Part shown: in pieces, positions 3,763-64,000 of the stretch
How the letters are laid out: every line of letters starts with the position of its first letter
How positions within the stretch are numbered: the stretch's first letter is position 1
Assembly: GCA_001949185.1 (NCBI GenBank)
Contig: BDGG01000003.1
Location: 500,679-564,678, forward strand
DNA from: Ramazzottius varieornatus
Lineage: Eukaryota; Animalia; Tardigrada
Direction of reading: 5' to 3'
DNA length: 64,000 nt
The notes under the pieces: generated by a model
Database searches by the model: none
What the model saw: the letters and a program-made list of their open reading frames with translations, nothing else
Told to the model about the DNA's origin: nothing
Made by a program: the position numbers and the translations under genes

Positions 3763-5002
3763 TCAAGGAAGTTCATGAAGTTTATATTCTGTGTACAACT
3801 CGTCAGTTCTTTTGTACACCGGGTCCATGGAAGCTGTCATACGACTTGCATACTCGCCAATATCGCTGTAAGAATGCTTAGAAATCTTTTCCATCAGCCC
3901 AACTTTGGACGGTAGAGCATACATGGCGAGATGAGCGGCGTTCCTCACGATCCAGCCATGATATCTGTAAAGGGTCGATTTTATTTTAAAAATGGAGGCA
4001 AAATACAAGTGTGTAAAACTACTTTGAGAGGCTTTGCTTGTAGGCTTCTTGAGCAATAGTCGACACCGGGTCCTCGTCCTTCGCGTCGATCAGTCCTTTC
4101 ATCAAGAGGACGATGAAGTCGAGAGCGCGGTGAAGACGTAGAAGAGTGCGGCTGCCGGAAGGAATGGTGGTCTTGTTGGTCGGACGTCCGGGTTCTAGAC
4201 GTTCTTTGGGAGCAGCAGTCTCAAATTCCATCATTGACTTGACAGTAATGTAATTTAGACCACGAATAGGACACTTGTGATGCTTTTCCAGGATGCTCAG
4301 TTTGTCCTTGACGTCGTCACCCACAAAGGAAAAGACGGAACCCATCAACTCGAACAACCTGTGAGAAATAAATTCAAATTTGGTACATCAGTGAATGATT
4401 CATGACGTCAACCTAGATCGTTACCTCAAGTGGCGCACGTTTCCATTAATACTGCACGAAGGCATGCGCCACTTGAGAAGAATTATTGATCTGGGTGACT
4501 TCATCCGCAATGACGTCATTGCGGCCGAACCCGAACACCATGTGCCCTTGTCTCAACGAACGGTGGATCACGTGACTGTCAGTTAATCAAGCCTCAACAA
4601 TCAACTCGGTTCCAGTTCGTTGGAGCTTTACGCACCTTTCCAGCTCACGATAAGCAAGAATGTAGTGGCCCATATCGATCTCGTCGCTCTCGATGCACCG
4701 TTCAAAGTTTCGGCCGACTATCAGCATGTCGAATCCATCGTCCCGAGGCTGGAAGTGGTACTTTGAGGGCTGGTCAACTTCTAGATCATTTTCCGAGAGG
4801 GAGCGCTGGTGTGGATGGCTCAAGAGTGTTCCGTCCGTTTCGTCCACTCCGGTCAGCCGCGCTTCGTTTCCGTTATTTGAGGAGCGAGTAGGAAGAGGTG
4901 GCGACGACTTTGTTCCTGCCGGGAAAACGCATGGGATGAGAAAACCAACTGGAATCTGGAGAAGAATCTCCGTTTACCTCGTCGCTCTTGCGCGTTATCC
5001 AT
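3763..5002 (-). CDS. CPTP: Glycolipid transfer protein family, ceramide-1-phosphate transfer protein-like, multi-exon
   Basis: FELMGSVFSFVGDDVKDKL, SGSRTLLRLHRALDF and YHGWIVR motifs; spliced start MDNAQERR (5002-4978) joins in frame to an exon starting at 4915. Confidence 0.85.
4415..4492. repeat. GTGGCGCA-N27-TGCGCCAC palindromic module (CPTP intron)
   Basis: CTCAAGTGGCGCA 4425-4437, spacer 4438-4464, TGCGCCACTTGAG 4465-4477, outer AGATC/GATCT. Confidence 0.9.
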
Positions 5003-5540
5003 TCTGACCAGTACGTGTATCAGACTATCAGTCAGTCAGAGTCTCTTCTTCGTCATAATGTCATGTCAGCGTCAGCTGTAGTCGGTCATCCGTGAAGATT
5101 AGCAGTAAATAAACGCTCTGGGAAACTTCTCTAACCGGAATTTCTGATTCCCGAACAACAAGACACAAAATGTATCCCAGGGATCACGGATACAAATCGC
5201 GAAACCAAAGCGAATCACGGAATAGTTTTTCTCCACCAGTTACAGTTACACTCTACTGATAATTACGTGATGTAAGACGCGAATAAAATCACGTGAGTTT
5301 CTGACGATAACAACATTGTGGAATGCCACGTGGCCAATATGGCATCCTGTATGACATTACGAGTTTGCCCCACATTCCATTCTGTAAACACATGTGACAT
5401 CACAACCTGTCATCATTTCAGCGTCGCAGTCTCGCATTCAGCCTTTAATCGGACTTTCCTTTCCCCGAACGAGCTCTGAATCCTTCTGACGCCTTCCCGA
5501 AAGTGCGTTTAGTTTATTTAATCTCTACGGATGCTGAAGG

Positions 5541-7317
5541 ATGGTCATTCATCACATTGCCAGTCTAACTCCCGCGCTAAACCACATTGATCCGACAACG
5601 CTCGCTGCTCCAATTCCGCGTCACACTCATCATGCTGGCTCTGTCAATATTCTTGTACCTCCAACTCCGCAACAGTCACCCATTGCCACGTTCTTCTCCG
5701 GACCTCCACTCGTTCACAAAGTCGTTTCTCCCCGAGTGAAACATGCGAGAAAATCGGCTGACTCGCTGGTAGCAGGTACGGTAACATGTTATTGTGTCAT
5801 GTAATGTACTGCAGTATCGTGGCCAATTAACATTTCGTAAGTTCACCGCTCCGTTCACCGCTCCGTTCACCGCTCCGTTCACATGACGGGAACGGCAGAA
5901 TGTGTGGTCAAAGCCGTGCCAAGCACGAACTTGAGTGGAGTCGGTTTCGCTCCGCTTTGTGCGGGACACATCTTGACATCCGACAGGTTGTCATGTCATT
6001 TTTTCGGTCTACATCACATTCGCAACTGTCATGATTATGAGGGATCCTCATTTTCCTTTCCTTTCGCAGGTACGATCGCCGGAACAGTCGAAATATGCAT
6101 TACATATCCCATCGACTATGTGAAGATTCAGCTACAGCTCGATGCACGGTCTGCGAATCCGAGGTACGAAGTATCAGAATAAAACATGTAGCCAGAAAAC
6201 TGATGAAAAAACTTTCTTTTCGCCAGGTATTCTGGCATGGCCGACTGCGTTCGGCAAACTATCCGCCACCATGGCTTTCGAGGGCTGTACCGTGGCCTAA
6301 ACGTGGCCGTCCTGAGTCCGAAGGCTGTAGTGAGGTTTGGGGCTTTCGAACAGTTGAGGAAGCTCTTCGGAGATTCCAGAGGTGTCCTGACACCCACCGC
6401 GACCTTCTTCTGCGGGATGGGTGCTGGAGCTCTTGAAGCAGCTCTGGCTGTCACACCTGTCGAAAGCATTAAAGTCAAGTTCATTCATGACTTGAGCTTC
6501 TCGCAGAAATATCAGGGCTTGGTACACGGCATAACTTCCATCGTCCAACAACAAGGTACGAAAGTTGCTCGAAAACTCAAATGAATCCGAATTAAATTTG
6601 GAAAAATCTGGATAAGATTCAGAACTATTCCAGAGTCTCGAAAACATGTTCGAGATATTGGTGCCAGATTGTAGCGCACGGGAAAAGAATCGATTTTAAG
6701 CAAGTAAACGCGACACGATCGTATATCTAAGTGGCGCTCGTCTTCAGTTGATGACAATGAGACCGTGCGCCACTTTAATAGTGGGACGATCTCGTTGAGT
6801 TTGTTTCCCATCGTTTGGCTGACCTTATCTTTGTTATCACAGGTCTGAGGGGAATATACCAAGGCCTAGTGCCTACCGTCATGAAGACCAGTACGAATCA
6901 AGCCATCCGCTTTTCCGTAGTGGAAGGTTTGAAAGGCTGGAAAAAGGGTGACGATCCTCACGCGAAAGTGAATAAGGGTTTGACGGCCATTTTTGGTGCT
7001 GTGGGCGGAATCGTCTCTGTCTTCATGAACACTCCCCTCGATGTGCTCAAGTCCCGCATGCAGGGACTCGAAGCGCACAAATATAGAAATATTATGGACT
7101 GTGCATATAGTATTGCTTCCAAAGAAGGACCCAAAGCGTAAGGATAATTAAGCTATCAATAAATTTATTTGCGAATACTAAAACTCTTATTTGTTTCAGG
7201 TTTTACAAAGGAACGACTGCCAGATTGATGAGAGTGCCTTTAGAAACTGCGATAACTTTTACAGTTTACGATTTCGTGATGGAGCTTCTCCACGAACATG
7301 TATGGGAGCATCACTAA
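5541..7317 (+). CDS. SLC25A1: Mitochondrial tricarboxylate (citrate) carrier, paralog 1
   Basis: Three Px[DE]xxK carrier repeats; [65 protein letters not shown]. Exon 1 (5541-5775) splices to 6070 giving SLVAGTIAG. Confidence 0.88.
5841..5882. repeat. 12-bp tandem repeat (GTTCACCGCTCC)x3.5 in SLC25A1 intron 1
   Basis: Read directly from the sequence. Confidence 0.9.
6717..6791. repeat. GTGGCGC-N27-TGCGCCAC palindromic module (SLC25A1 intron)
   Basis: Spacer 6739-6765; outer GATCG/CGATC. Confidence 0.88.
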
Positions 7318-12827: not shown

Positions 12828-15282
12828 ATGGCCGTACCCCGTCGACCGATTCTTGTCGCCCCGGAGAGGGGCTTTGGATTTCATAAGATTATCTTCTGGA
12901 ATTTTCTACTACAGTTTTCTTCCACTAGCGAAGCGGGGCTCGCGACCTGGATGTGAGTAGCGGTGTTTGTTAGCGGTATCGTCGTCATCTGGAGAACTTG
13001 GCGACAATGTCTTCGTGCTCCGAACTAATGAGGTTCCACAAGTGGGAAACCTACTCTTTGGTGTTTTGTTGTCACTAGTTATGAGCATGCATCGTTTAAA
13101 CGGATTTCCAGAAAACAAGTTTTGTTTATTCTGCAGGCACGTTGGACTGGCCGCGTCGAGCGTAGTCAATGCCCCACTGCATCATGTGTCGGAAAACAGT
13201 GTCAACAATTGGCGCGAAGTGCGCACCGCCAGCGAAATAAAGCAAAGTTTACCGAACTTGGATTGGTGTCAGCGGATACCGGGTCTGGTCGAGCACCAAC
13301 TGGCATTATGTCGGCGCAGTCCCGACGTTTTCCGGAAAGTCACCGGGGCAGCTCAGCTGGCCATCCATGAGTGCCAGGAGCAGTTTCGTGGAGAACGCTG
13401 GAACTGTACCACCGTCAACGACAGCACCGTCTTCGGCCGAACTGCTGTCAAAGGTCAGTCGAGTTGTCCGTTGTTGGAAGAAAAACACGACACACTCCCA
13501 GCCCGTAGTTATACAAACGAAAAGGATTTGCTTTTCCAAGTGACGCACGGTTTCGGCCGATTACACTGACGATGTGCGCCACTGGGAAAACAATCAGACT
13601 CGTTGAGGTCGTTCCTCCAAGTGGCGAACACTCCCAGTGGATAACGCAGAAAGGATGCGCCACTAAGAAAAACACCTTTGTCGAGTGTTTGCCGATCTCT
13701 CATGTGCAAATATTGCTAGTAATGTTATTTCGAACGTTGCTATCAGTTCATGATCAGAAGTCGAAATCAGAAACTGACAAATTTCAGAATTCTTTTGTTA
13801 ATTTTCGGAGCGATATCTAGTTCGAAGTTGGAATTAGCTAACTGGTTGACTTCCTGTTTGTAGGCAACAAGGAAACTGCATTCATCGCGGCCATTTCTTC
13901 CGCCGCAGTAGTCCACGCCGTGGTACGAGCCTGCAGTGCGGGTAACCTGACGGAATGTGGCTGCGATACACGGCAAGATGGTCAGCACGCCGCTGGTGGT
14001 CAGTGGAAATGGTCCGGCTGTTCCGATCATGTCGAGTACGGCATGGAGTTCTCCCGCCAGTTCAATGATGCACCGGAGGAGATTAAACGCCGGGATGCCC
14101 GTTCCATCCGCGACGCCATGCATCTTCACAACAAGGCTGCTGGTCGAATGGTAAGTGGGGACCGAGGAGAAGCATATTCTCACTGTTTTCCTTTTGTGTT
14201 TGATGAAGTCGATTTTTTACGATAATGTGTCTGGTCAAAGTCAGGGAGGCTTACCTGAGATGCTCAGTGTCTCACAGGTACTCGTAGGCGAGGTCTGTCA
14301 TAAAAGAAGCGCATACAACAACAGAAACATTAACACGTCTGGCTATTCATTGATCAAGTTGCTAATCACCACCATTTTGTCTGTATCATTTGTGGGAAAA
14401 ACTGCTAAATGGTTTGTTTGTTAGACGTGTCATACTGTACCATTTATGATCTCCTCACAGCATTCTCTGTCATAAACAATGGAGAGACTTTACCTGACCG
14501 ACAGCTAGAAAGCTATAAAAGATCACTTTAATCAGTCTGACTGGAAACTCGTGCAACTGTTTTTAGTTTCTACAGTGTTGTGCTGAAATTGGCACTACGG
14601 AGAATGACACCGGTATTTTTTCTACAGATCGTACAGAAGCATATGCGACTCCAGTGTCGCTGTCACGGCGTCAGTGGTTCGTGTCAAGTCAAGACTTGTT
14701 GGAGTGTCATGCCGAAGTTCTCTTTTGTGGGTCGAGTACTGAAGAAACGCTATGATCGAGCGGTCTGGATCGCCAAACGATCTATCGTCAAGTTGAAAAG
14801 AAGAGGACTTAGCCAAGGAAAGGAAAGAAAGAAACCGATCAGAGGCGACGAACTGGTCTACCTGGAAAAATCCCCAAACTACTGCAAAGCCAATAAGAAA
14901 CGAGGTTTGAAATTTCAAGTTCAATTTCTTTTAGATTTTCTTTGATGGCGGATGTTTTAGGTATCATTGGAACGTCAGGAAGAAGGTGCAACTCAACGTC
15001 CGCCGGAGCGGATAACTGCGAGGAGTTATGTTGCGGACGAGGACATTACTCACGCGGTACGTGCAGACAGATCGGGCTGTTAAACTGTAAAATGCTTGAA
15101 TGAGCTTTCGAATAACGGAAAAAGCGGGCTTTTTGGCCTGAGGCTACAGCCTTGTTAATTGTCATCCGGTCTTTATTGCAGTTGTAACGCGAGTCCACAA
15201 GTGCCATTGTCGCTTCGTCTGGTGCTGCGAGGTCATCTGTCAAGAATGTGAGAAAAAGATTGAAGTGAATTTCTGCAAGTAG
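12828..15282 (+). CDS. WNT16: Wnt ligand, Wnt16 subfamily, multi-exon
   Basis: [24 protein letters not shown]...[32 protein letters not shown] (acylated-Ser motif), [22 protein letters not shown]. The N-terminal WMHVG and the SAGNLTEC motif fit Wnt16. Confidence 0.9.
13524..13705. repeat. Two tandem palindromic modules (Wnt16 intron)
   Basis: Spacers 13548-13574 and 13629-13655, both 27 nt; right flank GTTTGCCGATCTC. Confidence 0.88.
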
Positions 15283-21048: not shown

Positions 21049-24000
21049 ATGGATCAGCAGAGTCTAGGTTCTGGATCATTGGCTAGTGCGAATTCTCCGC
21101 AAAAGAGTATTCTACACCGACCTGTTGATACTGTCCGCGACGTGCTCCAACGTATCTCTTCCCATGAAGCAATTCCTCGGTTGGATCGAAGTCGGAGTCA
21201 CGTGGCTTTTCATCAGGATCCGGAACTGGAAACACATTTGGTTCAGCTGATTGATGAAGAGGAGGAAGAGAATGGCGATACGCTCGGCAAAGATTTAACC
21301 AGGAGGAGGAGGAGGAGGTCGGTGTCAATTGACGCCAGCCAAGAAGTCCGACGCGGGAGCGACGATACGTGCAACTCGCAAGAAGAGGAAAAGCTTTCAA
21401 GCAGAGGAATAAGCAACCCCGGCTTCGGCTTACCGGAGGTAAGAAAAAAGTAATATCTTTCGCTGAATCTGGGAAGCCGGCAAACAGAACGGACAAGATC
21501 GGTATTTCAAGTGGCGCGCACTTCCAGCCAACAACAATGAAAAGTGCGTCACTGTGAAAGATTATATTGGACGATTCGTTTGCCGACCTCCCAACTTACG
21601 AACCATCAGTCACGTGAATATTTTCTCAAATCCTTGTACAGCTGAGTACGGTTATGCAATAGTTTTAATTTCGGTTTGCGGTATTGCATGATGCCTGATC
21701 ATGCAGATCTATCTGCAGTCTTCTGGATCTATCGATTTTCCACATTCCGACCAACTTGATTGTTCTGATTGTCCAACTTGAGTGGTTTTTTTCAGAACGA
21801 TGAAGGACAGGACGAAGACCATCTTCCACCGCTTCGGCGCGACTCGCGCAATGGCCCTCGCTTCCAGGTGGAAAACGAGACCAAGCCACACACCTTTCAA
21901 ATCGGTCCCGCCATCGGGGTTTCGGAGTCGGACGTTAATCTCCATACGAAGGATCCGCATAAGATGCACCGGAGTCATGCTATTATGGATACTATCCGAC
22001 GGATCGGCTCGCGCGAAAACGTCCGTGCGGTATTCCATCGGAACCACAGTCACGTCAGCTTTCACGACCCGAAGGACGTTATTCAGGACCATGCGCGGAA
22101 GATCACTCGACAAGGATCTCGGCCTTTCGACCAGCAAGACGTCGAAGTATACCGGCGGGAAATTTCAAGTCGGGCTAGTCAACTGAAGCTGTGCGCTAGC
22201 CACCCAGCTTTTGAAAGGCTCATCCAGAGCTTCGATGAAGATAACGAGGTAAAGAACACACCGAAAAACTGACACATCTGCGAATAACTTCGCCCAGATT
22301 GTCAGCTCGAGTGGCGCAGGGTTTCTAATCGACAGCTTGCGCCACTTGTAAAAACGATCTTTAAGTCTGAACAAGACTAATTACTCAAGTGGCGCACACC
22401 TTCATTGTAACTGGTTCAGAGCGTGCGCCCCTTGAGGCAGCAATCTGGTCGAGTTCATTTGCTAACGCGTCAGTTGCGAAGAAAGCCGTGTTCGTAAACT
22501 ATTTTCTGCAGGATTCCGAGCCCAAAGTTGAGCCGATGGATAACGATACTCGAATGTGGAAAGCCTACATCGTTCCTTTTTCCTCCCCTCAAAAATTCTC
22601 TGTGAAGCAGCGCAACGCCAGTCAGGGCTTCGGACCCAACGAACCTCTACCCGTAGTGGAGAACTACGCTGTCGAGTCCGGTGCGAAGGTCCGACCTACC
22701 CTCGACGATCTCCGTCGTGAGCAAGGCATGGCCGAGGAGGAACTGGTACGGAATACCGGTAACGAAGCGTCTTTTGACCGAGCCAAACTCGGCTGGATCC
22801 AGGGGGTTGTTCTTTGGACCATTCAGGATCTGTGGGCAGTGCAGTTGTTCCTTCGGCTGCCGTGGCTAGCGGCGCAGGCCGGCATCGGATTGTATACTGT
22901 GATAGTGTTGGTCAGTACGGCTATTGCGTTGTTGACGTCGCTAAGTACTTCGGCCATCGCTACCAACGGAGAAATTGGAAGTAAGCGTCACTGTTCTTTT
23001 TGCATCTTTCCTCACACTGTCTGTGTCTTGGATTTTATCCAACTAAAACAACCTTGTATTTTTGCAGTCGGTGGCACGTACTTTATGATTGCAAGAAGCT
23101 TGGGCCCAGCCTTTGGCGCAGCTATTGGAGTGATTTTCACTTTGGCAAATGTCATCAACATCTCGTTGAATTTGCAAGGTTTTGCCGACATCGTTGTCAT
23201 CCTACTGAACGTAAGCTCAGACGTTAAAAAAGGGGCTACTGTGCTGAAGTTGAAATCTAGTCTGTATCTTCGGAATAGTAGTAAAAGTACTGTACGTAAC
23301 AGGGACAGTCGCGATTTGACAAAGCCCAGGGGCTGCAATGCGGATTTTGATTTTGAGCCCGTTTTCTACAAACATTCAAAAATTTCTTTTCACACTTCGT
23401 TGTTCGCTACATTTATTCGTGGTTTTCAGGAACATGGCCAGCGTATGATCGATCACGTGAACGACACACGCATTATCGGTGTCATTGCGTTGGTGGCGCT
23501 TACGCTTTTTACCCTAGCCGGTATGGTCATCGCTTCTCGGGTGAAAACCGTGTGCATGATCGTCATCATCGTGGGCATATCTGCTGTGTAAGTGGTTTCA
23601 TCGCCAAACTTCCATTTTTACCAAAGCCGACAATGTACTTCAGGTATATTCTTCCCACAGCATTATTGGCTCGATAGTGCCACCAAACCTCCAGGAACAA
23701 GCCGCCGGCTTCGTCGGTTACTCATCCTCCCTCTTCCGCGAGAACTTTGTGCCATACTTTCAGCGAGACAAGTTCGGCGATCAGAACTTCCTGACATGTT
23801 TCGCCGTCTTCTTCCCATCCATCTCCGGAATCCTAGCAGGAACATCCATCACGGGAGACCTACGTGACCCGTCAGGTGCCATCCCCAAAGGTACCTTCGT
23901 GGCCACCATCATCTCGGCCACTGTCTACCTCGTACTGGGATGGGTCTCGGCCGCAGTGGTGCTGAGAAATGCCAGTGGAAAAGTGGAAAACTTGATAGCG

Positions 24001-26834
24001 GGCAACTTGACGGCTTGTGCCAGGGATATCACGTGCAAGGAAGGGCTGCTGGGCAATATGGAAATCATGGGCATCATCAGTCACTTTAGACCGTTGATTA
24101 TCGCTGCGACCTTCGCGGCAACGATTAGCACGTCTATCGGGTGTATTCATTTCGCGCCAAAGGTCTTCCAGGTAGGTCAGATTCCGTTTGTAAAATGATG
24201 AGTTGGCTCTTACGACTTGGTGTTGTAGGCGTTGTGCCGAGACAAGATATTCCCTGGAACCGCCATCTTTGGCAAAGGTTTTGGGCATCACGACGAACCG
24301 TATCCGGCGTACCTACTTTCCATGCTGGTCGCTGTTGCCTTTCTCATGCCATGTATGTTTTCCTATAAAAAACCAGAAAGCAAAACCTTTCACTTTACTC
24401 TGGATTAACGTATCCAGTAGAGTTTAAAGCATTCCAAGCACTGTCAATTGCGTACAATGATTCCGTTCTTAAACCTCTACCGTCTCCAGTGTGATCCATT
24501 TTCCGACGGTTTTTTCCAACATGTCTCCGGTAACAGTGACTAAAGTCTGGACTGTGAACGGTGGGTGGCTTTTTTTCAGCTGACCTGAACTTTATCTCGA
24601 ACATCGTCTGCAACTGCTTCCTGATGACGTACGCCTTGGTTAACTACGCCACATTTAATTCGTCCTATTCAAAATCCCCAGGTATGCAACTTTTTGTATT
24701 CTAGACGATCCACTTCTTCATGGTTGTAGTCTAACAATGTCTCCATCAGAATATATGTTGTGATCTTGTTTAGGGTGGCGACCAACGTTCCGGTACTACA
24801 ATCAATGGTTGAGCCTCTTTACGTGCGCCGCCTGCCTGGCATTCATGTTCGCTTTGGACTGGATGTCGGCCATCATCGTCTTCCTACTCTCCGTTGTCCT
24901 CTGGCTGTACGTCTTCTACAAGAAACCCGACGTCAACTGGGGTACCTCCGGTGAAGCCAACGTCTACCGCAGCGCCCTCTCCGACAACCTCCGACTACTC
25001 AAAGTCCAGACACACGTCAAGAACTACCGACCGCAGATTCTTGTACTGACTGGTCTACCGTTCGTCCGACCCTCGTTGGTCTACATGGCCAACAGCATAA
25101 CTCGGTCCACCGGCAAGTGAATCCGCTGCTTCGTATGCACGAATAGATACTCGAACTTCTATGTTACAGGTCTAGTGATCTGTGGACACGTGATGGTCGG
25201 CGAACCCATCCGCGAACGCACTGTTCTTGAGCAAGAAGTCTACCAATGGTTCCGCCGAAGGAAGATCCGTGCCTTCTACGAGTACATTGCCGCGGACAGC
25301 ACACTGTTCGGCGTGAAGGCTCTTCTTCAAACAGCGGGTATGGGCAAGATGAAACCCAACATTCTGATGATGGGATACCATTTGAACTGGGTCCAGTGGA
25401 ACCCGGTGTCCATGAAGGAGTACGTCCAAGTCATCCATGATGCATTTGATGCCAATCGAGCAGTCATCATCTTCTGCGCAAGGGAGGGCTTCGATATTTC
25501 CGAAGTGGTCAACTTTGAAAAAATTTGTGGTGACAACGCTGCAGCCTCATTGGACACTGGTACAGTCACAAAAATGACTCACGATCCAATTTTTTTGGCC
25601 ATGCTGACGATGTTGTCACAGACCACACATCGTTTCTTCATCTTTTCTGACTAGTGCCATTTTCTACGGTATTTTCGAGACAAGCAGAATAAGCTGGCGG
25701 TTAGTTGTCCACGGACTGACTGTTACTCTTGTGTTTCAGATGGAAAGGATGAACCCGAGTCCGAGCCGGAGAACAGAGCCGCCATTCCGCTGGAGGTCAA
25801 TCCAACGGACAATCCAGAGTTGAAAGCACGCATTGAGATGGCCGAACGGTTCGAGCCCGGCAGGAAAAAGAAATGTGCGGGCGAGGTGCACGTCTGGTGG
25901 TTGTACGATGATGGCGGTCTAACCTTGCTGGTGCCACACTTGATGCGTAGGAAGACGCCTTGGAAAGGCAGCAAGCTTAAGGTCTTTTGTCAAACTGGCA
26001 AAGACGGTAACGCGGAAGAAACCAAGAACAGCATGGAGGCGTTGTTGAACAAGTTCCGCATTAAAGTCGATGATATCATACCGGTGGATTTGTCTATTGC
26101 ACCTTCAACAGACGCGTATGTTCGGATCTTTCGTTATGATCATTTTTTAAAATCATTAGTAAACCGTTCAACTCCAAAATCTGGAACTTCGGCACGCGAA
26201 TTGGCCCAGATCGTTCTCAAGTGGCGCACTTTTCCAGCCAGTAACAACGAAAACGTGCGCCACTTGTGGTAACGATTTGAGTAATTCCAGTTGATCACGT
26301 CCCGAACATTTGAAAGTCCTGTAGACTGTCGCCATTATTGAGTCTGGATAAGAATATTTCTCTGCGGGTTTTAATTTCGTATTCTACGCGAAACCGCTTT
26401 CATTATTTCACCTTTGGACTTTTTTGCAGGATAAGTTCTTTCAATAGCGTGATCGAAGCCCAACGGATGCAGGCGGGCCACGTCAACGACCCGCATTATG
26501 TCATCGGTGACATGGATTGCTTTGATTATGGTGATCGGACTATCAAGCAGATTCGGTAAGAGTTCGTTCCTTTAGAGAGCAGAACGTCTCAAAAGTTTTG
26601 AATTGCTGCTTGAAACAATTCACCCGCTGAATCATTTCTCCATCTGCCAGGTTGAGAGAGCTCTTGTTGGAGAATTCAGCAGCGGCATCGTTGAATGTGA
26701 TCACCATGCCGTTACCCAAACGCGGAAGGAGCAGGGCCTTGTACATGGCCGTGCTAGCCAGCATGAGTGCCGGTCTTCCGCCCACCTTGCTGGTCAGAGG
26801 AAACCAGGAGAACGTTTTGACGTTCCATTGCTAG
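21049..26834 (+). CDS. SLC12 cation-chloride cotransporter, NKCC/NCC-like, multi-exon
   Basis: KLGWIQGV, LFLRLPW, SAIATNG, GGTYFMIARSLGP, FAVFFPSISGILAG, DVNWG, HVKNYRPQILVL, VWWLYDDGGLTLL, LLVRGNQENVLTF; RFQV motif in the N-terminus. Confidence 0.93.
21469..21594. repeat. Palindromic module with outer inverted arms (SLC12 intron)
   Basis: Spacer 21519-21544 (26 nt); outer GGGAAGCCGGCAAAC...GTTTGCCGACCTCCC. Confidence 0.85.
22280..22466. repeat. Two tandem palindromic modules (SLC12 intron)
   Basis: Spacers 22319-22337 (19 nt) and 22397-22423 (27 nt). Confidence 0.88.
26184..26279. repeat. Palindromic module (SLC12 intron)
   Basis: CAAGTGGCGCA, spacer 26229-26255 (27 nt), TGCGCCACTTG. Confidence 0.9.
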
Positions 26835-31950: not shown

Positions 31951-32848
31951 TCAGGTGCGGAAGTATGACTTGTCCCCCGTTGTCGACCACAGTTTCAGAA
32001 ATTAGTTTCTCCCCATTGAGCCAAGTACTTCATCCCAAATTTTCAGCAATATGATGCACCATTCAGCATTCACATACGTTCAGGGATATCCAGATTATGA
32101 GCGTGCGCCGAGCTGCGGAATTAGTTTACCGAAAGGGCTGTTGTGTGGAAAAAAACGCCACTTTCGGAAAAACATTTGTTTCGAGCGCCCAGTTCCCTTG
32201 GGAAACCTCATTACGTTTTCGAAGCATGCTCCCTTGGTGGTTCTTTTGAAAGCAATAATAGGTTTTCTTTTGGATACATTGGGTGTCGAATTTATCCGGC
32301 TGGAAACTTGGACGCGGGTCCGAAAAACACTGGCTCTCGCCTTGCGAGAGCTGAAAGAGTTCAGTCGCGGAACAACTCCCACCGAAAATGGACCATACCC
32401 TGATGCATCTACTGCAAATCTCACAAAAAGTTTTCAAGATGCCCATGAGAAGTGGAAAAGTGGCGCATTTTAGAGGACGTTTTTACACCCTCGAAAACGA
32501 AAATTCTTGTTTTTGAAAAACCAGAAGTCGCAGTCAGATAACTTGTGACTGTTGTCGTGAAGAACCAACTCAGTTCCATAGACTAATATGATTCGCTTTG
32601 AAATCGGTCAAGCCAGTAGCTGTAGAAAAAATTCGGAAAAACAGAAAAACAATCTTCTCCCTTTGACTGTAAACCTAGTTTTCTCCTCGTGTGGGCAACG
32701 CACGGACCTGATTCTTGCTGCAGAAAAAGGAGAAGTGTTGGTGGACAACCCGTCACATGAAGCAGAAGAGAAAAGACGAAAATCTAACTCGTAAAAATTT
32801 TTCAAATATGTCCCCTCGAAAAGGGACAAGTTATACTTCCGCACCTAA
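31951..32848. mobile_element. Non-autonomous mariner-family element, ~0.9 kb
   Basis: TA|TCAGGTGCGGAAGTATGACTTGTCCC ... GGGACAAGTTATACTTCCGCACCTAA|TA, the same TIR as 18056-19324. Confidence 0.88.
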
Positions 32849-36853: not shown

Positions 36854-39800
36854 TCAGTACGCCGTAAACAGTTTCTGAAATGCGATTGACGAAGCCCAGA
36901 GAGTGGACACGAAACAGAGTATTTTGTTGGAAAGCTCGCAGGTGGCAGCACTACAGACGATCGGCTGAGAAGGATGTATTGGATACACATCTGCTGGTTT
37001 CCTTCTCTTGGCCGAGGAGCTGTTTGTCCCCTCCATTGCAGATCTTGGTCTACAAGAAAAGCGTCCATTGATTCAATTAAGTTTAGAATTCCAAAATTCC
37101 GTTCCATTTGGTAAATGAGCGTGCTGGCAGCTAGCTTACGCTGGCGTTGTGCTGAGCTGCTGCTTGATCCACAACTCGTTAAAATTCCGATTAGAAGTCA
37201 TGTTTAATGAGGGCCGACGTCGTCGTCCAGCAGCTCGAAGGACGTCTTGCTCGCCGTAATCCGGAGGAAGATTAGGCAGCAGACGCCACTCGTCATGCGC
37301 CTTCTGACGACGCCCAGTCTTCCCTTCTCGACCGACTTTGCGCCGATGATGATCCAACTCATCATCCAAGATTAATTTGCCCGTATGGGCTTCGGCGTGC
37401 GTATGAACCATAACGTTCTTTTGGCGGTTCCTTCTTCGTCCATTCGCAATCCTCGTCCTGCCGAAAGATAAGCTCATTACATCGTTTTCTGGTGCAACTA
37501 ACTTGGTTTGCGCTCCAGCTTCGGTATACATACACGAAGAAGTATTTTCAAACGCGAAGCCCACAATATGCAAGTGGCGTAAAGTTGCAGTCAATAACAT
37601 GCAAAATTGCGCCACTCAAAACAAGGACGATCCCGAGACTGTTAGTGGGAAAGTTTACCTGTTTGCTTACTTACTGTTTGATGTGATGATTTGCGGATAA
37701 GTGGGTGACGTTGTAACCCACTTCCTTCATCAGATCGATAATGGAATGGTTGCCCAAAAAATGGCCTGGAAAATAACAGCAAACAAATCATCTTACTTCT
37801 CGCATTGACATCCTCTTATGTAAATGCGAAGTCCAGCAGGATTTGTTTGAGCAGGATTATGAATGCATGACAGAGCGTACCGGCGCCGAAAGCAAAGAAA
37901 AATGTCCGATGAGGGAAGGTTTCGAGGAGCTCGACGACGCGTTTGGCCATGCGCCGGTTTCTCTTGTGTATCAGCTCTGTGCGAAAGTACTGGTCAATAG
38001 AAGGCGTCACCGAGTTGTTGAATGAAGGTGCAGCAGGTAGGGCTGCCGACATCCACTCATTAGATCCATCCCGTATGGCTATCACAGATTGCAAATCACC
38101 GCAGTTGTATTCGTAGACCAACTCGTCCACCGAAGGACTTTTCGGAGAACTCGAAGTAGCATTTCCTACCCGAACTGCCTCGTAATGATCGAGGGCTTGT
38201 TCCAGCGCCACCAGTACCTGCAAAACCAAACACCATCATCAGACGTATCATTTCGACAACCGCGAGAACTATTCAAGACTTGGTGAATCACCTCTTTTTA
38301 CTGCCTCGGCTTCCCCTACATTCGGGGTTTTTTTCTTTTTTGGAAGCTCGGCAAACAAACTCGACCAGATCGCTTTCTTAAGTGATTTACGTTCGCAGTT
38401 TCATCAACTGAAACCGTGCGCCACTTGAAAAAGCGATCTGGTCTAAAGTTTGCTTGTTTCTCCCAGTGGCGCACGTTTCCAGTGGTATGAGCAGCAAGCG
38501 TGCGCCACTTGCATGAACGATCTGGTCGAAGTTGTTTGCCGAACTCACATTCTGCGAAGAAAGCTTCAATGTACGAACGAAATTAGGCTCAAATTCGAAA
38601 TTTCTAGTTCGGAGTCTTTCCAGCTTATCAGAGCTAACTTTTGCATTGGCAGCATTGGGGAACTCGGGTTTGACAGATTAATGACAGGATTGTCCGTGCT
38701 GGAGGGCTGATCCGAGCTTTTTTTCTACGGTTTCGGATGGTTTCGGTGAAATTTGGTGTTTCGTCTCTTCGCGCGAGACACGTGCACGGTATTCACTTAG
38801 AGAAAAACTGGAACACTGGGACAGTCTTATCTATCGAAGCCGAGCCTAGGATAAGTTTTGTAGTCATCAGTGCGGTCAGAAGAAAATCAAGACGACCAGT
38901 TCTCCCTTTTTGAGATTTGGCGTTCATGACCTGCCAGTCCGAATTTCGAAATTTCGAAAATTGCCTATCGGTTGGACCAGCCTCCGCAACACGGTACCAG
39001 CCAATAAAAATTCTGTATATACAAATAGGACGGTAGTATTCTGCAAACATGAAAACGATCGTGCTGAAAGTATTAATGTTGATGTTGTGGTGAAGCATCA
39101 GCACGTTGTCAATCATCAGCACATGCATAATCACTCATTGACACTTGCCGAGCACTGAAATTTTTCCTTTCCATTCAAAAGGAAAATATTGGCAACGCGA
39201 TACCATTGTTTCGTCGAATCTACCGCCCAGATCGTGTTTCCCTTCTCGATTGTTCACACAGTAACTGATACTGTTGAACTTCTATTGAGTGAAATTTCGA
39301 AAGCTTATTTGTTCTGGTCTGTAAGCCGAAAAGTACACAGAGCCGTGAACGATACATTGGAGCAGCTTTGCTTTACAAAACGGCTTCTGTCAAGTTTCTG
39401 CACAGCTAGTCCGTCAAGCCGAGTTTTTAATCAGCAGCGCGGATAATTGAGGCCCCATTCAGCTGCAAGTGAAAGTGCCCTGCTGCGCGCATTGACCACC
39501 GGGCAGTTCTACCGTCGATACGTTCTCCTTGAATGGTCAACCTCAATTGGAGGGAACGGTATAGTAATAAAGGAAGAGAAGTTTGACAATGATGAGTGAA
39601 TCGATTAAAATGACAAGTACGTACTCCTTCACAAACTGCCCTGATGGGATAATTTACCTACTGTACTCCCCTTTTCAGATTTTAATCGAGAATACGATTT
39701 CATTTAACTTTTATTGGAAGTCATTGACTTTTACGACGTGGAATATATCATCGTTACTGGGTTGGTGAAGGACTTCAATGAGGATCGATTTAAGCAAATT

Positions 39801-41837
39801 GTTGAAGTTGACGTATCATTTTGAGAAGGATAATGTGAGTACGAGGGGGAGGAATAAACAGTCAATGTGGGCAGTTGTCCAGCGAATTCAGCTTGTCAAA
39901 AGGGCGGCCTGGATGGATCTGGATGAGGGATGTCTAATGTGGACTTTCATCCGTCATCCCCTAATTTTCAAATGAAGCCCAAAATTGTGGAGCAGATCGA
40001 ATACCCTGCTGCTGTTCCCAGATTCATCCATCACGTTCTCGACTGGGCAAACACACCGTAGAACGGTTTTTATCAGTTCCGTAGAATCTACCCTCCCCCC
40101 CCTCCATCCCCTGACCCGTCAGCCGTACCTCGCTCTGGACATGAGTTTTCATTTTGTCCGCAAGGTTGCTGTGCTTTCAGTGCACATGTTTTGATGGTAC
40201 GAATGAAGGTGTGTTGCCTTTAAGATACATCAACAGCAGACGTGTCCGTTTGAGGTTAAAAGGATGGTAAACACAGGCAGTGAGGAAAGGCTGCTGGACG
40301 GTACAAAGCCGGTTGGGCACGAGAAGGCCATCCTGTCAAAAGTCAACGTGAATTTTTCACCGTCATTATGCAGTGGGAGCATCACTCGACAAAAGCGCTA
40401 TTGACTCTGATATATATATATCGTCAACTGTGCAACTGTCCACCGCACAGCTTTTGACCACTTGCAAAAGTGGTAGCACAACAAAGTCAAGCAAAGTGAA
40501 GCAGAGTTGAACAAAGTGTCTTGTGCTTCTCAAATAATATCCCTTCTCAGCTTCCCTCACTGCACAGTCCAGATTTCTGTGTACACAATCCTCGAAACTA
40601 CTGTTCAGTTTACGGTATACATCGCGTGAATCCAGACGGCACACTCCAGTTTGCTCGCACGACATTCCCCAATTTCAATGCAAACATTCCCTAATTTTCC
40701 AATACTTCTCCAAGATCGAGAACACAACAAAAATAAAGGTTCGCGTTCTCGTTAACCCTTAGAAAATTTTCCGAACGTTTGAATGGGATACAAATCATTA
40801 GACTTTACGTGGTCGGAGGAGTGTACACGCACCACGAGAAACTATGGACCAGTAAAAATTATGGACCAGACCTTATCGCTACAGCGGTACGGAAACATGT
40901 ACTGTACGTACGTACGCGACTGATTCACTCTAATACACTTTCCGACACTTTGCCACGTTTAATTTTCAATGTTGCCGCCTTTTCGGCCTTGCCCATAAAT
41001 TTGTACTGGCCCATAATTTCTCGTCGTGCGTGTACTGAAGTTTACCATGCTGGTATGCCTGGGTGCGTGAAAAAGAACTCGGCATTTTTCTGCGCATATT
41101 CGACCAAACTGGCAGAAATGGTAGATTTGATTTGGTGATGATTACAATGTCTGCTAATGACAATGTCTTCGTACCTGCGAGACGTTCATGGTATTGAGAG
41201 GTGCGCATTGTTCTTGGACGCTCTCGACGGCGCCCGTTCTTTTCTTGCGTCTGCCGGCCTCTTGAGCCAGGAAGGCGTCCAGCACCGGCCCGCCACGACC
41301 AGCCATCTCCGTCTCGGTCAGCGAATTCAGGAGAAGCAGCAACCACACTGGGCGCTTCCTTTGCCAGTCACTGGTCAAGGCACTGAAAAGGTAGTCGCTG
41401 TACAGCCCCGCCACGGGACTCTCCTTACTCTGCATCCACTTGGGCAGCATTCGTTGCACGTAGACCAGGTGAGCTTGAACGCGAGTGAAGAGCGGGGCAG
41501 GAAGGATTTGGCTGAGGTGTTGCGTGGGTGGAAGGAGCTGACAACGAGCCAGGGATTGGATGGTGTGCCGGTCGGATAGATCTAGCTCGAAGATGACTTG
41601 GTCGGACGAGTCAAAGGCGGACTTGGTGGCGGGAGAGACAAAGTCCCAGACTTTGCTGTAGGGGACGTGAATCGTACCGAAAAAGTATGAACTCTTGGAG
41701 GGAAAGGTGGAGTTGGAACTCGAGGAGAGATACGCTTTTTCGATGGACCAGAGGAAGGAGTTTCGAGTTTGACCCTCTTTGGAACAAACGGGGTGGAACG
41801 CGCAGGAGAAGTTCACCGTGAAAGACATGACGATACC
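36854..41837 (-). CDS. TRABD2: Tiki (TraB-domain) metalloprotease, multi-exon; first exon uncertain (possibly ~42190-42303)
   Basis: NSFLWSI, SYFFGTIHVPY, FELDL, WQRKRPVW, PVLDAFL, AVESVQEQC, YNCGDL, ELIHKRNRRMA, FFAFGAGHFLGN; the last exon (36854-37050) encodes a hydrophobic GPI/TM-like tail. Confidence 0.92.
37571..37632. repeat. Palindromic module (Tiki intron)
   Basis: Spacer 37582-37607 (26 nt). Confidence 0.8.
38341..38549. repeat. Best-preserved element: outer inverted arms plus two tandem palindromic modules (Tiki intron)
   Basis: AGCTCGGCAAACAAACTCGACCAGATCG...CGATCTGGTCGAAGTTGTTTGCCGAACT; spacers 38390-38416 and 38474-38500, both 27 nt. Confidence 0.92.
38717..39498. repeat. ~790 bp dispersed repeat, copy 2 (inverted, inside a Tiki intron)
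   Basis: Near-identical reverse complement of 27285-28066. Confidence 0.92.
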
Positions 41838-41875
41838 CTGGAAAGAAAATGGTGCCCAGTTCGTGGCCTGTCATG

Positions 41876-41940
41876 TCAAGTGGCGCAGGCTACCATTGTC
41901 ATTGTTCGAAGGTGCGCACCACTTGGGAAAAACGATCTGG
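41876..41940. repeat. Palindromic module (upstream of the first confidently identified Tiki exon)
   Basis: Spacer 41888-41914 (27 nt); right arm CGCACCACTTG...CGATCTGG. Confidence 0.82.
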
Positions 41941-43554
41941 TTCGATTCATTTTCGCATGCCCCATATACGACTTGCTAATATAATGCAAAAAAATTTACT
42001 TACTATGAAAATTAGTTTATGGACTTTCCAGCGTCTTGAAGTAACGTTCGGCCAATTAATCCCATCAAGAAAGTATTCCATAATTTAATCCACAAGGCAA
42101 GCAATTAGTCCTTGTCGATTAAGCGCAACAGGGCGTAATAATCTTCTAGCATAAGGATAAGCGACCAGCGATTTTCCGGTTGACTGGACCGGTAACCAGA
42201 ACAGGGATGCTATCCATCGGAGCTTATCATTGCTCCATTTCCATTTCCAACAGCCGTGGCCCATGTTCACCAAAAGCCACAACAATACTCCCTCATAAAA
42301 CACCTGCAGAAACCTTCGGCATAATTTCCACTGAACTTATCCTGACAGCATCACCTTTAATGCAATTACGCTAAATTGTCCGTCGGTTAACCCGCTTCCT
42401 CGTCAAAGCGTAAACATAATCGAAATGGACTCGACTGGAAGATCGCCTGTCTCTTCTTGTACTTTCTTTGAAACCGGCTATTCACTTCCATTGGTTGGAA
42501 GACCTAGAGTGGGTGGAGTCACAGTGTACTGTAGTCGTCGGCTTCGTTGGAGCTTTCAGTTGATTGTTCTGTGAAGAGAAGAAGGCCTTCTGTGTGGACG
42601 TTGCGTGTTTTGCAGCGAAAACAGCGTAATCCATTAATTCGCACCTGCCATCTCTCATTTTGTTAACTTTTGTCTACTTTTGTTCTACAGGCGATGCTTG
42701 AGCCGTAAAGCCTACACAATTACCGTGTTGGAACATGGCGTGCCGTCCGATGGATCAAAGCGCCGGCAGATAAGCCTGTGTACGCAAGCCCTTCAATCAA
42801 CGCAGACATAAACTTTCGCCGCCATGCAGCCCAAAGATTTGTTCAATGTGTCAACACTACGGAGAACACACTTCGATGAGAGTACGTAAGGGTTTTCCAA
42901 GCTTTCATACCAAAAAAGACGTGTCACTGTTCTTGCGTGCTCTTGGGAAACCGAGTTTCTCAGACTTCTGAAAATTTTTGAAAGAACTGTGCTTGTTTAA
43001 GTGACTATTGAAGCCAGGGAAGACGACAGGCAATACACGTGTCTGTCTCGCCTTTTATGCCTTCGATTTCGTCCCATCCCTTTGGTCGGTTTCTTGGTCC
43101 TTCTGACGAAGCAAAGTGCCGAAAGCGAGTTCATCATAACCTGACTACTGTTTCAACAAAGATCTAGTTCGAACTCGTTAGTCCAGAGAACCACCATGAC
43201 TTTTACAGAACCGAAACTTCACTGTTTAAACGAAGCTTTTGGGCAGCGGTAGAGCCGCATCCACTTATCAAAGACAATAGGGAATTCATCTCAAGGAAAC
43301 TTTCGCGGTGGCGCCACCTTCTGCCAAACCATGACTGTAAGTGCTGCAGCAGAACAGATGAAAGGCAAACGAAACCCGAAGCGAAGGCCCAACTATCGAG
43401 AACGTTCAAACTAACTAAGAAGCAATTATGAGCGTTCGTTTCACGAGGGCAAAACAAGTTAAAGTTAGAACTGCACAACCGGTTGAGATCCACAAGTATC
43501 GTCATCAGCATCGTTCACAACGGATCTGTCTTTTCAGACAATATTACTGTCATG

Positions 43555-55104: not shown

Positions 55105-55154
55105 NNNNNNNNNNNNNNNNNNNNNNNNNNNNNNNNNNNNNNNNNNNNNNNNNN
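55105..55154. other. Assembly gap (50 N)
   Basis: Run of n. Confidence 1.
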
Positions 55155-61031: not shown

Positions 61032-63063
61032 ATCCATATGGTTCTGATTCAGTTGATCGCTTGAACACAGCATGGCATTTTTTGTCGCTCTTTGGCTCCT
61101 CTGGATCGCCGAGCTTTGATATGGGTTCAGTTGGTGTTCGCGAGCTTCGAACACGCTGTGGGTCGTTCGTGAGCGATAATTTTGCGGCGAAAGAAAAACA
61201 AGAGCAACACTCGGCACGTTACGCACTAGCAGCTACTTGATAATGGCGTGGATTGTCTTGTTACGTAACGTGATACACGAGGAAAACAAGCTGGCGTGAT
61301 ATTTGATGTCTGACGCCGCGAGTACTATGATCTCCCGCCATGGTAGCTGGGCGATCCGCTACGGATAGAGTGATGGTTCACTGTACGAACTCTTGCACTA
61401 CGCGGATGCTGAGGAGCAAGTCGTCGAACGGAGAGGCGAAGAGGCCTCACGCACGCACACATGCAGTTTCCGCACGTCAGCCATTTCGCTCTGCAATTCC
61501 ATGCTCGTTCATCATTTCTCCCCTGTCAAGGTCGCTGGTAAAAATATCCCCGAGAGATGAGCAACACGAGCTACCGATTAACTAATCTTCCTCACCAGCC
61601 ACATTCACATCTCCGGATCCACGCCCGCAGCGCGTGCAGTGTAATCCTGTAATTAGTTTCGCGAGGAAAGCCAGAGAGCATCGTTCCATCAACTCGGTCA
61701 ATCCACAGGTCCTCCAATCAACTGAGCCACAAGCTATTCCGGAAAACCAATCAACGGTTGCCAAAGGAGTACGTTGACGTCTGCGCGGAGCAGTGGAATG
61801 GTTCGATTGATTGGACCAGCCCTCAGTAACTTGATTGACTTCTGAGTTCTTGTCGAAGACTGAGAGCCATCTACGCGCTCGCTTCTTTCAATTCCTGCAG
61901 AACTGTGTCGTAATTTCCGGTACCAGGAGTGGTGATTGTGGTCATGGAAGCGATATGACTAGGTAATGAGTTATTTGCACCCACGCGTGGCTTTTATGGT
62001 CGCTATAGAGTGCAATTAAGTCTTGTTCATTGCTTCTTCTGCCAGAGAAACACTTCTTTCAAGTACCACGCATTCCTCTGGCCAATTATTCAGTCGAATT
62101 TGAACTTAATGAATTACAAGATATGAGTATGTAACGAGCCACCTTATCGCAAGGTGGAAAGCTGGAAGAAAGTGGATTTGGAAGGACAACTTCCGTGTGG
62201 TTTGCAATATCATTCCTTGGCTTGATTAATTGATGAAGCAGAGAGGAATGACAAATTCCCGCGAGGATCATCACGGTTAAGCCTACACGAGTAGCGACTC
62301 TCTGTCTCTCTTGGAATTTCAGTGTTTTCACAAATGTGTTACAAACAGTCATGCGGAACACCCAGAAATGAACCGCTTCAAGGAATGTCTGATGGGTCAT
62401 TGGAGTGAGGCATCTAGGTGGAGGATCTGGCGAGATAGTAGAGTGTACAGAGAGGAATGCAATGGATCTGGTGTTTGTTGCCTGTCGATAGCGTGGATTA
62501 TTTATCTTGACAGGAAGTGCCTTTGGCACATGGCCGTATGTCTCCACATGGCTGACGGACTTAAGTTTACTACCCCGACTCATCCCATGATTTATCAAGT
62601 TGATCCCTGCATCGCAGACCAGGAAGTTTGTGATAGCTGTACAGGCGAGGTTGCAGAATGAATCTGAATCACACCCAAACAAGGCATGTGATTCCATATC
62701 AAGTGTCCTTCCCTACAACGTTACTTCCTGGCGTCAGCGAACCAACAACTTCACCAAGTAACACAATTCAGTGTTCATGTCTGTTTTATTAGAATTCATA
62801 CCGAGGTTAAACTTCGAGCTTCAGCAGGCTTTTTCACTATCGGTATAGTTTCTCAAAGAGGAGAGGAGTTCAAATTTCAGACAATCAAAACAAAGATCGA
62901 ATTCAAGAAGGAACCGCCATCATCAAAGATAAATAGACAAAAAGCAAATCTATTTAGAGGCACTTTAAACCGGAAGGAAGTCAGAGGGGAACGGGAAGGA
63001 GGAAAGAGGCCCTTACTTAATGGCACACCAAATCAACTCTAACGTCTTCCTCACCACAGAGTA

Positions 63064-64000
63064 TTACAAGCCTTTATTATAAAACAGGGCAGTATCATTA
63101 GTTGCTGCTTGCAGCTTTTTCTCCAGCTTGTGGCGAGGGATGGTGGATTCCTGCGGGAACAATCCGATGGCTAATGGCAGAGCCAGACCAAAAGACAGAG
63201 CACCCAGGGTGGCATTTACAGGCAGATAGGCTTTGGGGAAGCGAGTGAAAAGCGCTGTCTTCTCCAGCGCGGTCATGATTAATGGCGGGATTGTCAGGAT
63301 GGGAGCCGGGAGAACGATGCGTGTCAGGGCTGTTTCTTTAATGGCATCGAAGGCTGCAATCTTCGAGGTACCAATTACCTAGAAAAGAAATTCTAAATCC
63401 GTGCAGTGTTCCCAGTTTCGAAAGGAAAGAGAAAAACACGTTGCTTGACTTTTGCCGCTCCGAAGAAAGAAAGATTAGAAGGATGCCATTTTCTTCCACC
63501 ATTTGAGACCTAGTCAGACAAACGCGGCAATATCGTAGCCTAGATCCGTAGCGCACGCTTTTGGCCATAACAGTAAAACCGTGCGCCACTTGCCAACACC
63601 GTCTGGTGGAGTTTGAGTTTCCTTTGAAAATTCCAGATGCGAAAGTTTCTCAGAGCCGTAGCTCACCTTTTTATTTTTGTCGTACACTTCAATTCCAGTA
63701 TTCAGCTCTTGTCGACGCATCAGGAAGACGTTACAGACGTTAGCTACTGCGACGGCGGGGAAGGGAACGAACTTCTGAATGAGGAGACGACGAGCAGGAG
63801 TAAGGCTCTTCGCCCGAGTTATCAGCTGGTTGAGTCCGACAGCAATGCCTACTGCGCTCGTTACAGCTCCTGAAACGAAGAAAACACAAGCATATCACTG
63901 GATATTCTTTATAAAAGATTCATTTCTGTTTTAGGAAGCCGATGCCGCTGGAAAACGTCGGAGACCTAAACCGGAAACTCAACGGCGAATATTCATGTGT
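63064..64000 (-). CDS. SFXN5: Sideroflexin-5-like, 3' part, multi-exon
   Basis: FVPFPAVAVANVCNVFLMR, ETALTRIVLPAPIL, FGLALPLAIGLFPQ, C-terminal YNKGL. Confidence 0.9.
63548..63606. repeat. Palindromic module (SFXN5 intron)
   Basis: GTAGCGCA, spacer 63556-63581 (26 nt), TGCGCCACTTG. Confidence 0.8.

Follow-up and report, generated by a model that had tools for sequence, protein, structure and literature searches.

An 11-bp box decays more slowly than the rest of an ancient palindromic MITE in the tardigrade Ramazzottius varieornatus

Palindromic units and host genes

The DNA analyzed here, referred to as the window, is a 64-kb stretch of the Ramazzottius varieornatus genome that carries exons of GLTP, mitochondrial-carrier, wnt, SLC12, TIKI/TraB metalloprotease and sideroflexin genes. 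The initial annotation described a dispersed intronic palindrome in 14 units at 11 loci, and all of these are present; its hand count of the spacers between the arms (27 nt in ten units, 26 nt in three and 19 nt in one) is correct. The units, scored by nhmmer, are listed below. No strand is assigned to a unit, and the strands in brackets are those of genes.

4412-4507: MITE monomer, outer arms partly decayed, 59.7 bits; perfect arms and 27-nt spacer; adjoins GLTP exon 4022-4387 (minus)
6700-6810: MITE monomer in the intron of a mitochondrial-carrier gene (plus), 67.3 bits; plus-strand exons on either side (6207-6581, 6782-7138) each match Mito_carr
13513-13699: MITE dimer in a wnt intron (units 13513-13595 and 13591-13699), 50.1 and 63.5 bits; flanking exons correspond to wnt profile 2-61 and 59-163
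21476-21590: full-length MITE monomer in the upstream part of the SLC12 gene region, 71.6 bits; long hairpin, z = -6.3
22276-22465: MITE dimer (units 22276-22361 and 22367-22465), 48.4 and 65.6 bits; spacers of 19 nt (internal deletion) and 27 nt
26186-26296: MITE monomer, the best preserved in the window, 78.3 bits; starts ~6 nt past an SLC12 exon (Pfam match ends ~26180); hairpin z = -4.3
37570-37633: strongly decayed unit of which mainly boxes and spacer remain, 23.2 bits; missed by the motif-masked model
38345-38546: MITE dimer in the intron of a TIKI/TraB metalloprotease gene (minus; units 38345-38453 and 38454-38546), 76.9 and 72.5 bits
41855-41954: MITE unit whose right box carries a 1-nt insertion, on the 5' side of a TIKI exon, 49.8 bits
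60971-61042: truncated or decayed MITE unit, 38.8 bits; 27-nt spacer
63508-63616: MITE monomer just downstream of a sideroflexin exon (minus), 48.0 bits; SFXN Pfam match ~63649-63870

Intron placement was judged by consecutive Pfam profile coordinates in same-strand exons on either side of a unit. The initial annotation had put ten loci in introns; this is confirmed in the mitochondrial-carrier gene (6700-6810), in wnt (13513-13699) and in TIKI/TraB (38345-38546, between exons 41157-41870, TraB profile 9-162, and 37819-38235, profile 178-244), and is likely in SLC12 (26186) and sideroflexin (63508). The genome-wide baseline is 22% intron and 43% intergenic sequence (PMC5531438). The possibility that the element itself is the intron, an introner, is rejected because the Pfam matches of wnt stop at ~13455 and resume at ~13857, around a dimer that spans 13513-13699. 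An orthologous locus in a sister species was sought via the TIKI exon, and the best relative is only 60% identical. The nearest unit (60971) is more than 5.8 kb away from an assembly gap at 55105-55154, which leaves the finding unaffected.

Structure and classification of the element

What was noticed as a dispersed palindrome forms the middle of a non-coding MITE of ~127 bp whose sequence is palindromic almost throughout. The ~127-bp palindrome is the full extent of the element and includes both the arms and the outer AGATCG/CGATCT pair that had been noticed around them. Its consensus has the terminal inverted repeats of a MITE (116 of 127 positions are self-complementary, and 58 out of 59 tested mirror pairs complement each other), its size of ~127 bp, or ~200 bp for dimers, is within the range for MITEs (under ~600 bp, without coding capacity), and it is dispersed genome-wide in high copy number. 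There are two forms, monomers and two-hairpin dimers. The ends are poorly kept (identity 0.45-0.79), and the flanks have an A..T-type palindromic bias with no clear target-site duplication, in just 9 copies with both ends readable. A palindromic subfamily variant, 18G/110C, is present (p = 0.003), and some variants of this kind are older than insertion.

Each half-element contains one 11-bp box, AAGTGGCGCAC, ~40 nt in from the end, with its complement in the other arm; the boxes of a pair are inverted and 25 nt apart. In the spacer consensus, which is read in both orientations because the arms are palindromic, an inner stem (CGYTTCCAG/CTGGAARCG) encloses a 9-nt loop, CCAATAACA. The spacer is not the freely variable sequence first described; it is a decayed consensus, ~32% diverged, similar to the rest of the element. 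Neutral MITE decay had served as the null expectation against which the palindrome was set, and the palindrome turns out to be a MITE itself, ordinary as a repeat apart from its slower-decaying boxes.

The element resembles Tourist/Stowaway-type MITEs in its size (~125 bp), its lack of coding sequence, its near-perfect inverted arms and its thousands of dispersed, hairpin-forming copies in or near genes. In contrast to these, its head-to-tail two-hairpin form with a junction of its own is unusual, and an internal box outlasts the terminal repeats. REP/BIME and attC sites, to which the initial annotation had formally likened the palindrome, are also dispersed imperfect palindromes with short conserved boxes around a variable middle, but they are prokaryotic and lie between genes or in integron cassettes, whereas the MITE units lie in spliceosomal introns (wnt and TIKI, and probably SLC12). 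These bacterial systems do not apply to introns of animal genes, and an exact match to the paired-box pattern is absent from 185,579 prokaryotic genomes and from JGI metagenomes.

Copy number and age

In the window, there are 18 occurrences of GTGGCGCA or its complement, where shuffled sequence leads one to expect 1.67 and never gives more than 6. The paired pattern with perfect arms is present 4 times, with none expected; in the whole genome, this paired pattern is found 2,846 times, against 0 for the reversed control. Unselected sequence of 264 kb contains 52 MITE copies, and the 55.8-Mb genome holds ~11,000 units and so ~22,000 boxes. Divergence statistics are drawn from the 264 kb, supplemented by pattern counts over the whole genome. 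The R. varieornatus genome paper and a tardigrade comparison paper contain no description of the MITE, and the box sequence has no occurrence in the paper texts searched.

The copies are equally old and star-like, without close relatives, and probably go back to a single ancient burst. Per-copy divergence has a standard deviation of 0.064, against 0.054-0.057 under a binomial, a nearest-neighbour test of the copies shows no excess (z +1.3), and their common variants are not linked (r2 0.0218 vs 0.0208). When seven units were used as BLAST queries against the genome, none (0/7) had a relative with at least 80% identity over at least 110 nt. Dimer partners are no more alike than random pairs of units, and the use of dimers as a clock of in-situ duplication is rejected on that account. 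Because the copies have no age spread, a regression of box decay on copy age is uninformative.

Slower decay of the boxes

Decay has been ~3 times slower in the boxes than elsewhere in the element. Box divergence is 106/1074 (0.099, or 9.9%), compared with 0.303 in the inner remainder; the uniform substitution across arms and spacer that the initial annotation had named as contrary to its proposal is not seen. The Jukes-Cantor rate ratio of the rest to the boxes is 3.7 (bootstrap 3.0-4.5), and 2.9 once possibly ancestral high-frequency alleles are removed. The conservation of the arms beyond the remainder, as originally claimed, survives both arm-masked detection and an alignment-free genome count. 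A model with both boxes blanked recovers 50 loci, all within the 52 of the full model, and no box-less copies; detection bias is therefore not the cause of the conservation. In the genome-wide count, the box 11-mer has 7,002 perfect occurrences (control 20), and an arm 11-mer 15 nt from the box, CCAGATCGTTT, has 552 (control 6). There are also relic units in which the boxes are kept and the remainder is unrecognisable.

The edges of the box are sharp, with a rise from 0.65 to 0.90 at position 40/41 and a fall from 0.80 to 0.41 at position 51/52. In genome-wide counts, the odds of a C-to-T change at a CG are 0.29 in the arm and 0.046 in the box, and those of G-to-A in the box are 0.034. Such figures bear on a mutational cold spot, in which a germ-line protein at the boxes, or some other local property, would lower the mutation rate without selection. 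The reduction is uniform over copies and independent between boxes, and the central CG is the best-kept part of the box, all of which a cold spot would accommodate; edges sharp at single-nucleotide scale argue against it. CpG is not hypermutable in the element (0.189 vs 0.198), so that an explanation of box conservation by CpG or methylation is rejected and methylation protection cannot be the mechanism of a cold spot. A three- to eight-fold reduction by protein occupancy alone would, to our knowledge, be without precedent, and a cold spot appears quite improbable.

Within a unit, each box decays independently of the other (rho 0.02). The number of mismatches per box has a mean of ~1 and a simple, Poisson-like distribution, with no separate classes of intact boxes and of boxes in free decay; a clock whose start was merely delayed in the boxes would fit this as well. 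In a rival account, the element is an ordinary MITE whose lineages stayed mobile for long, gathered changes everywhere but in the boxes and, after the last insertion, decayed equally throughout with no host function. In several DNA transposon superfamilies it is normal for binding sites to lie internally, tens of bp from the ends, which favours such a legacy of transposase sites. Box mismatches and the independence of the boxes are as it predicts, and so is the lack of spread in copy age, given equal lineage depth; there are a few palindromic subfamily variants, and the best genome-wide BLAST matches of the queried units (76-79%) are little below the ~81% expected for sister copies. However, there is no subfamily structure, linkage or close relative among the copies, and simulated long activity under Yule growth gives a nearest-neighbour z of -0.9 to -5.4, opposite in sign to the one observed. 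The ends, which any transposase also needs, are the least conserved part of the element, dimer partners are as diverged as random pairs, and the relic units retain their boxes when the rest can no longer be recognised. A long-lived transposing lineage explains the pattern poorly because the copies are equally old, star-like and without close relatives and their ends are unconserved; these tests, with 49 copies and 7 BLAST queries, have modest power. The legacy is unlikely.

Spacing and pairing of the boxes

A fixed spacer length was the basis on which a geometry-dependent function had been proposed. Indels occur in the spacer of 12 of 49 sampled copies. Before controls, they are 2.6 times rarer in the spacer than in the arms; when dimer junctions and the homopolymer runs of the arms are left out, the rates are 0.015 and 0.023 events per nt (9 vs 15 events). 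A constraint on spacer length is rejected because the deficit vanishes with this control, and the argument from fixed spacing falls. Each box seems to act alone, and the spacing seems to be inherited from the transposon without separate maintenance.

The boxes could also act by pairing within intronic pre-mRNA, where a GC-rich 11-bp stem would loop out the insertion or feed a small-RNA pathway. Many copies are intronic, 6 of 8 copies folded give hairpins (z -2 to -6) with the box stem as core, and double compensatory changes are slightly in excess (80 vs 66). In spite of this, RNAalifold gives no consensus structure (0 pairs), paired cells amount to 69.8% against 68.5% in shuffles, and compensatory changes in box pairs number 2 where 2.6 are expected. 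Outside the boxes, ~55-65% of stem cells remain paired, and transitions have no transcript-strand bias to G-U-compatible changes. Protection is confined to 11 bp and ends sharply on both sides, in an ancestral stem of ~58 bp. There is no Rfam match, and a structured RNA or pre-miRNA-like hairpin family is rejected for want of covariation or a known family. The pre-mRNA hairpin of the initial annotation is not supported, and RNA pairing is highly improbable as the cause of box conservation.

Resemblance to the CTCF core

The loose likeness to a CTCF core mentioned in the initial annotation is borne out in part. In the tardigrade element, AAGTGGCGC agrees at 8 of 9 positions with AGGTGGCGC, the in vivo core of CTCF in Drosophila (PMC1904468), the reference being the fly core. 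The one mismatch affects a strongly conserved position, the G of 'AG', which is an A in the box; relative to the CTCF core (CC..AG..GGC), the upstream CC is also shifted out of register by 2 nt. According to the literature, CTCF pre-dates Panarthropoda.

A proposed path from transposase site to host binding site

The ~3-fold slower decay of the boxes suggests that they are kept as protein-binding sites. The reading that we hold to be somewhat probable is that they once served a transposase and have since been kept as sites where a putative host protein binds; we infer that selection is responsible and that it acts through a protein, as well as which protein that may be. One ancient burst of the MITE would have given rise to the ~11,000 units, many of them intronic. 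The box AAGTGGCGCAC would originally have been the binding site of the mobilising transposase, and such an origin would account for its inverted presence in both arms at a set distance. After the burst, drift would have taken the ends, inner stem and loop to ~30% divergence and the boxes to ~10% only, most likely through purifying selection that may be weak per site and act on nearly all of the ~22,000 boxes. Had transposition competence been kept, the ends would be expected to be conserved, and their lack of conservation argues against that. Weak selection across ~22,000 sites places a heavy demand on the explanation. The candidate host protein may be a domesticated transposase or a CTCF-type zinc-finger architectural factor. 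Of the dimeric DNA-binding site originally suggested, a sequence-specific binding site is retained as the best reading, with no sign that a dimer depends on two boxes in fixed spacing.

Known systems offer partial parallels. The MADE1/Hsmar1 MITEs of primates are short palindromic elements with two inverted arms and thousands of copies, whose hairpins also fold as RNA, and in SETMAR a DNA-binding domain retained by the host recognises the Hsmar1 transposase site in each MADE1 arm. The tardigrade MITE shares the inverted arms, the thousands of copies and the RNA-foldable hairpins. It differs in that its boxes lie ~40 nt inside the element rather than in the terminal repeat proper, and in that the slower decay of the sites is measured, not assumed, whereas the link to a transposase is one that we infer. 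Transposon-borne CTCF sites, for example in the rodent SINE B2, likewise come from one burst of a short repeat that spread thousands of zinc-finger motifs; in contrast to them, the tardigrade boxes form inverted pairs 25 nt apart, are candidate sites by likeness to the CTCF core, and seem to be under weak constraint in nearly all copies instead of a chosen subset. In its strongest form, the proposal states that a MITE burst seeded the introns of the compact tardigrade genome with ~22,000 sites for a CTCF-like or domesticated-transposase architectural protein, and that weak purifying selection has since held almost every one of these sites; this is speculative and, as a whole, doubtful.

Masking of the MITE accounts for much of the 'pervasive palindrome' signal in the genome. 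The point worth attention is the 2.9-3.7-fold protection of an 11-bp box across ~11,000 equally old copies. Should it be only a legacy of transposase sites, it would be a warning example against reading 'conservation' inside repeat families. If the slower decay reflects selection, the boxes would form one of the largest collections of protein-binding sites that transposons have left in a small animal genome and would provide a concrete motif for tardigrade chromatin biology. The strongest form of the proposal, if true, would amount to a genome-wide system of cis-elements from a single transposon family in an ecdysozoan.

Anatomy and abundance of the element

The 8-mer arm GTGGCGCA or its complement occurs 18 times in the window (1.67 expected), and 13 arm pairs are found when at most one mismatch per arm is allowed; the arms of the units at 38380 and 41876 are more damaged than this. 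A profile search of the window recovered exactly the 14 units at 11 loci listed in the initial annotation, and the hand-counted spacer lengths (27 nt in ten units, 26 nt in three and 19 nt in one) match those found. The nearest unit lies more than 5.8 kb from the assembly gap (55105-55154), which is irrelevant to the finding. In a 264-kb sample (the window plus 200 kb of other genome sequence, loci L001-L020) the profile detects 52 units, which extrapolates to a genome total of about 11,000. The 2,846 perfect-arm pairs and 7,002 perfect boxes counted genome-wide (assembly of 55,842,812 bases in 200 contigs) agree with this estimate.

When copies are aligned with their flanks, similarity reaches far outside the arms originally described. 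From the outside inward, the consensus comprises an outer arm (TTGGGAGCTCGGCAAAC...CCAGATCGTTTTCCC), an 11-bp box (AAGTGGCGCAC) and a 25-nt middle in which an inner stem encloses the loop CCAATAACA, followed by the mirror image; 116 of 127 positions are self-complementary. The spacer was described as variable, yet it has a consensus and appears in both orientations; it looked variable partly because both orientations were seen and partly because it is ~32% diverged. About a third of the units form head-to-tail pairs (period 74-82 nt); the two units share one set of outer arms and are joined by a junction particular to this form. Three same-orientation boxes with an 82-nt period stand at the very start of contig 1 (G000 C1:1478, 1560, 1642), and therefore arrays beyond dimers exist. 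Size, inverted arms and copy number make it very probable that the element is a MITE: it is real and, but for one unusual feature, of an ordinary kind.

Paired boxes are still visible in units too decayed for the profile. Two relic units missed by the profile search, L016:5826-5880 and L016:6560-6640 (G000 C1:1155826-1155880 and 1156560-1156640), retain only the two boxes at their 27-nt spacing and faint remains of CCAGATCG. Solo 9-mers (AGTGGCGCA) number 9 in the 264-kb sample against 1.7 expected, several of them within relic units; the solitary box at window 32459-32467 is not surrounded by any recognisable MITE sequence.

Genomic context

Exon fragments were searched singly against Pfam, and units were placed from flanking exons with consecutive Pfam coordinates. 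MITE units lie in introns of wnt, mitochondrial-carrier and TIKI/TraB metalloprotease genes, and probably also inside SLC12 and sideroflexin introns. Features in the window are:

12961-14222: wnt gene
26180-26186: interval of ~6 nt between the end of an exon's Pfam match and the start of the adjoining unit
37139-42336: TIKI-type metalloprotease gene
63616-63649: interval of ~33 nt between the end of an exon's Pfam match and the start of the adjoining unit

The two units next to exons are thus each close to a splice donor. TIKI proteins are Wnt inactivators, and the wnt and TIKI-type genes lie ~25 kb apart.

Slower decay of the boxes

Among 49 retained copies, divergence is 9.9% in the boxes, 30.3% in the inner remainder and 33-37% in the outer arms. 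The Jukes-Cantor rate ratio of inner remainder to boxes is 3.7 (bootstrap 3.0-4.5), dropping to 2.9 with high-frequency, possibly ancestral alleles set aside. As a check on detection bias, a profile with both boxes blanked was run against the 264-kb sample; it returned 50 loci, all within the full model's 52, and no box-less copies. Whole-genome 11-mer counts are independent of alignment and of copy detection. The box 11-mer survives 7,002 times (control 20) and an arm 11-mer (CCAGATCGTTT, 15 nt from the box, one per half-element in the consensus) 552 times (control 6), implying per-site identities of ~0.90 and ~0.72, respectively, assuming ~22,000 half-elements.

The conserved block has sharp edges. 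In the genome-wide counts, C-to-T at CG has odds of 0.29 in the arm vs. 0.046 in the box; G-to-A at the box CG has odds of 0.034, and the best-tolerated box change is G46A (0.12). Across the MITE copies of the window and L001-L020 no CpG hypermutability was found (C-to-T 0.19 at CpG vs. 0.20 elsewhere; G-to-A 0.15 vs. 0.19), which suggests that germ-line CpG methylation was absent over the family's lifetime.

Form of the proposed constraint

Conserved arms at a fixed spacing had been read as a sign of a geometry-dependent function, with a dimeric DNA-binding site among the candidates. Indels are 2.6 times rarer in the spacer than in the arms, but the arms contain T4C3 and A3-type runs, and dimers also non-homologous junctions; outside such runs, monomers have 0.015 indels per nt in the spacer vs. 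0.023 in the arms. Mismatches per box are Poisson-like (mean ~1), and the left and right boxes of one unit vary independently. Because the boxes vary independently and indel rates are alike in monomers outside runs, a geometry-dependent dimeric site finds no support. Regarding an RNA hairpin, 6 of 8 window units folded form one; outside the boxes most of the pairing has disappeared, no consensus structure is predicted by RNAalifold, no transcript-strand bias of transitions was seen and Rfam gave no match. The proposed likeness to CTCF holds at 8 of 9 positions of the fly core and fails at a key G. The nearest functional parallels are repeat-borne CTCF sites and MADE1/SETMAR, in which MITE arms keep a transposase site that a host protein uses. 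No description of this MITE was found in the searchable literature.

Box conservation before or after insertion

If the boxes were conserved only because mobile lineages needed them, the family should show subfamilies, close relatives and well-kept ends; none of these was seen. The ends are the least conserved part of the element, the copies do not spread out in age (sd 0.064 vs. 0.054-0.057), and there is neither a nearest-neighbour excess among sampled copies nor linkage among 42 common variants. Mirrored double variants show only a small surplus (80 vs. 59-66), dimer partners have diverged as much as random pairs, and 7 units compared with the whole genome have no relative with at least 80% identity over at least 110 nt. 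Simulated growth with long activity gives a nearest-neighbour signal of opposite sign to that observed, in a test of modest power. Taken together, the age, relatedness, linkage, dimer and end-conservation results favour, without proving, a single old burst after which the boxes changed more slowly. We lean slightly towards boxes constrained after insertion as protein-binding sites.

Three pairs of copies stand out in the genome (G000): 80-nt stretches at C7:1115197 and C7:1119299 differ at 1/80 nt, C7:2207292(+) and C7:2314272(-) are identical over 80 nt, and C40:1439 and C40:4961 have the same BLAST statistics against the query unit (76.1 bits, 80%, query 1-93). These look like recent segmental duplications, and such pairs could act as an in-genome clock of change after insertion.
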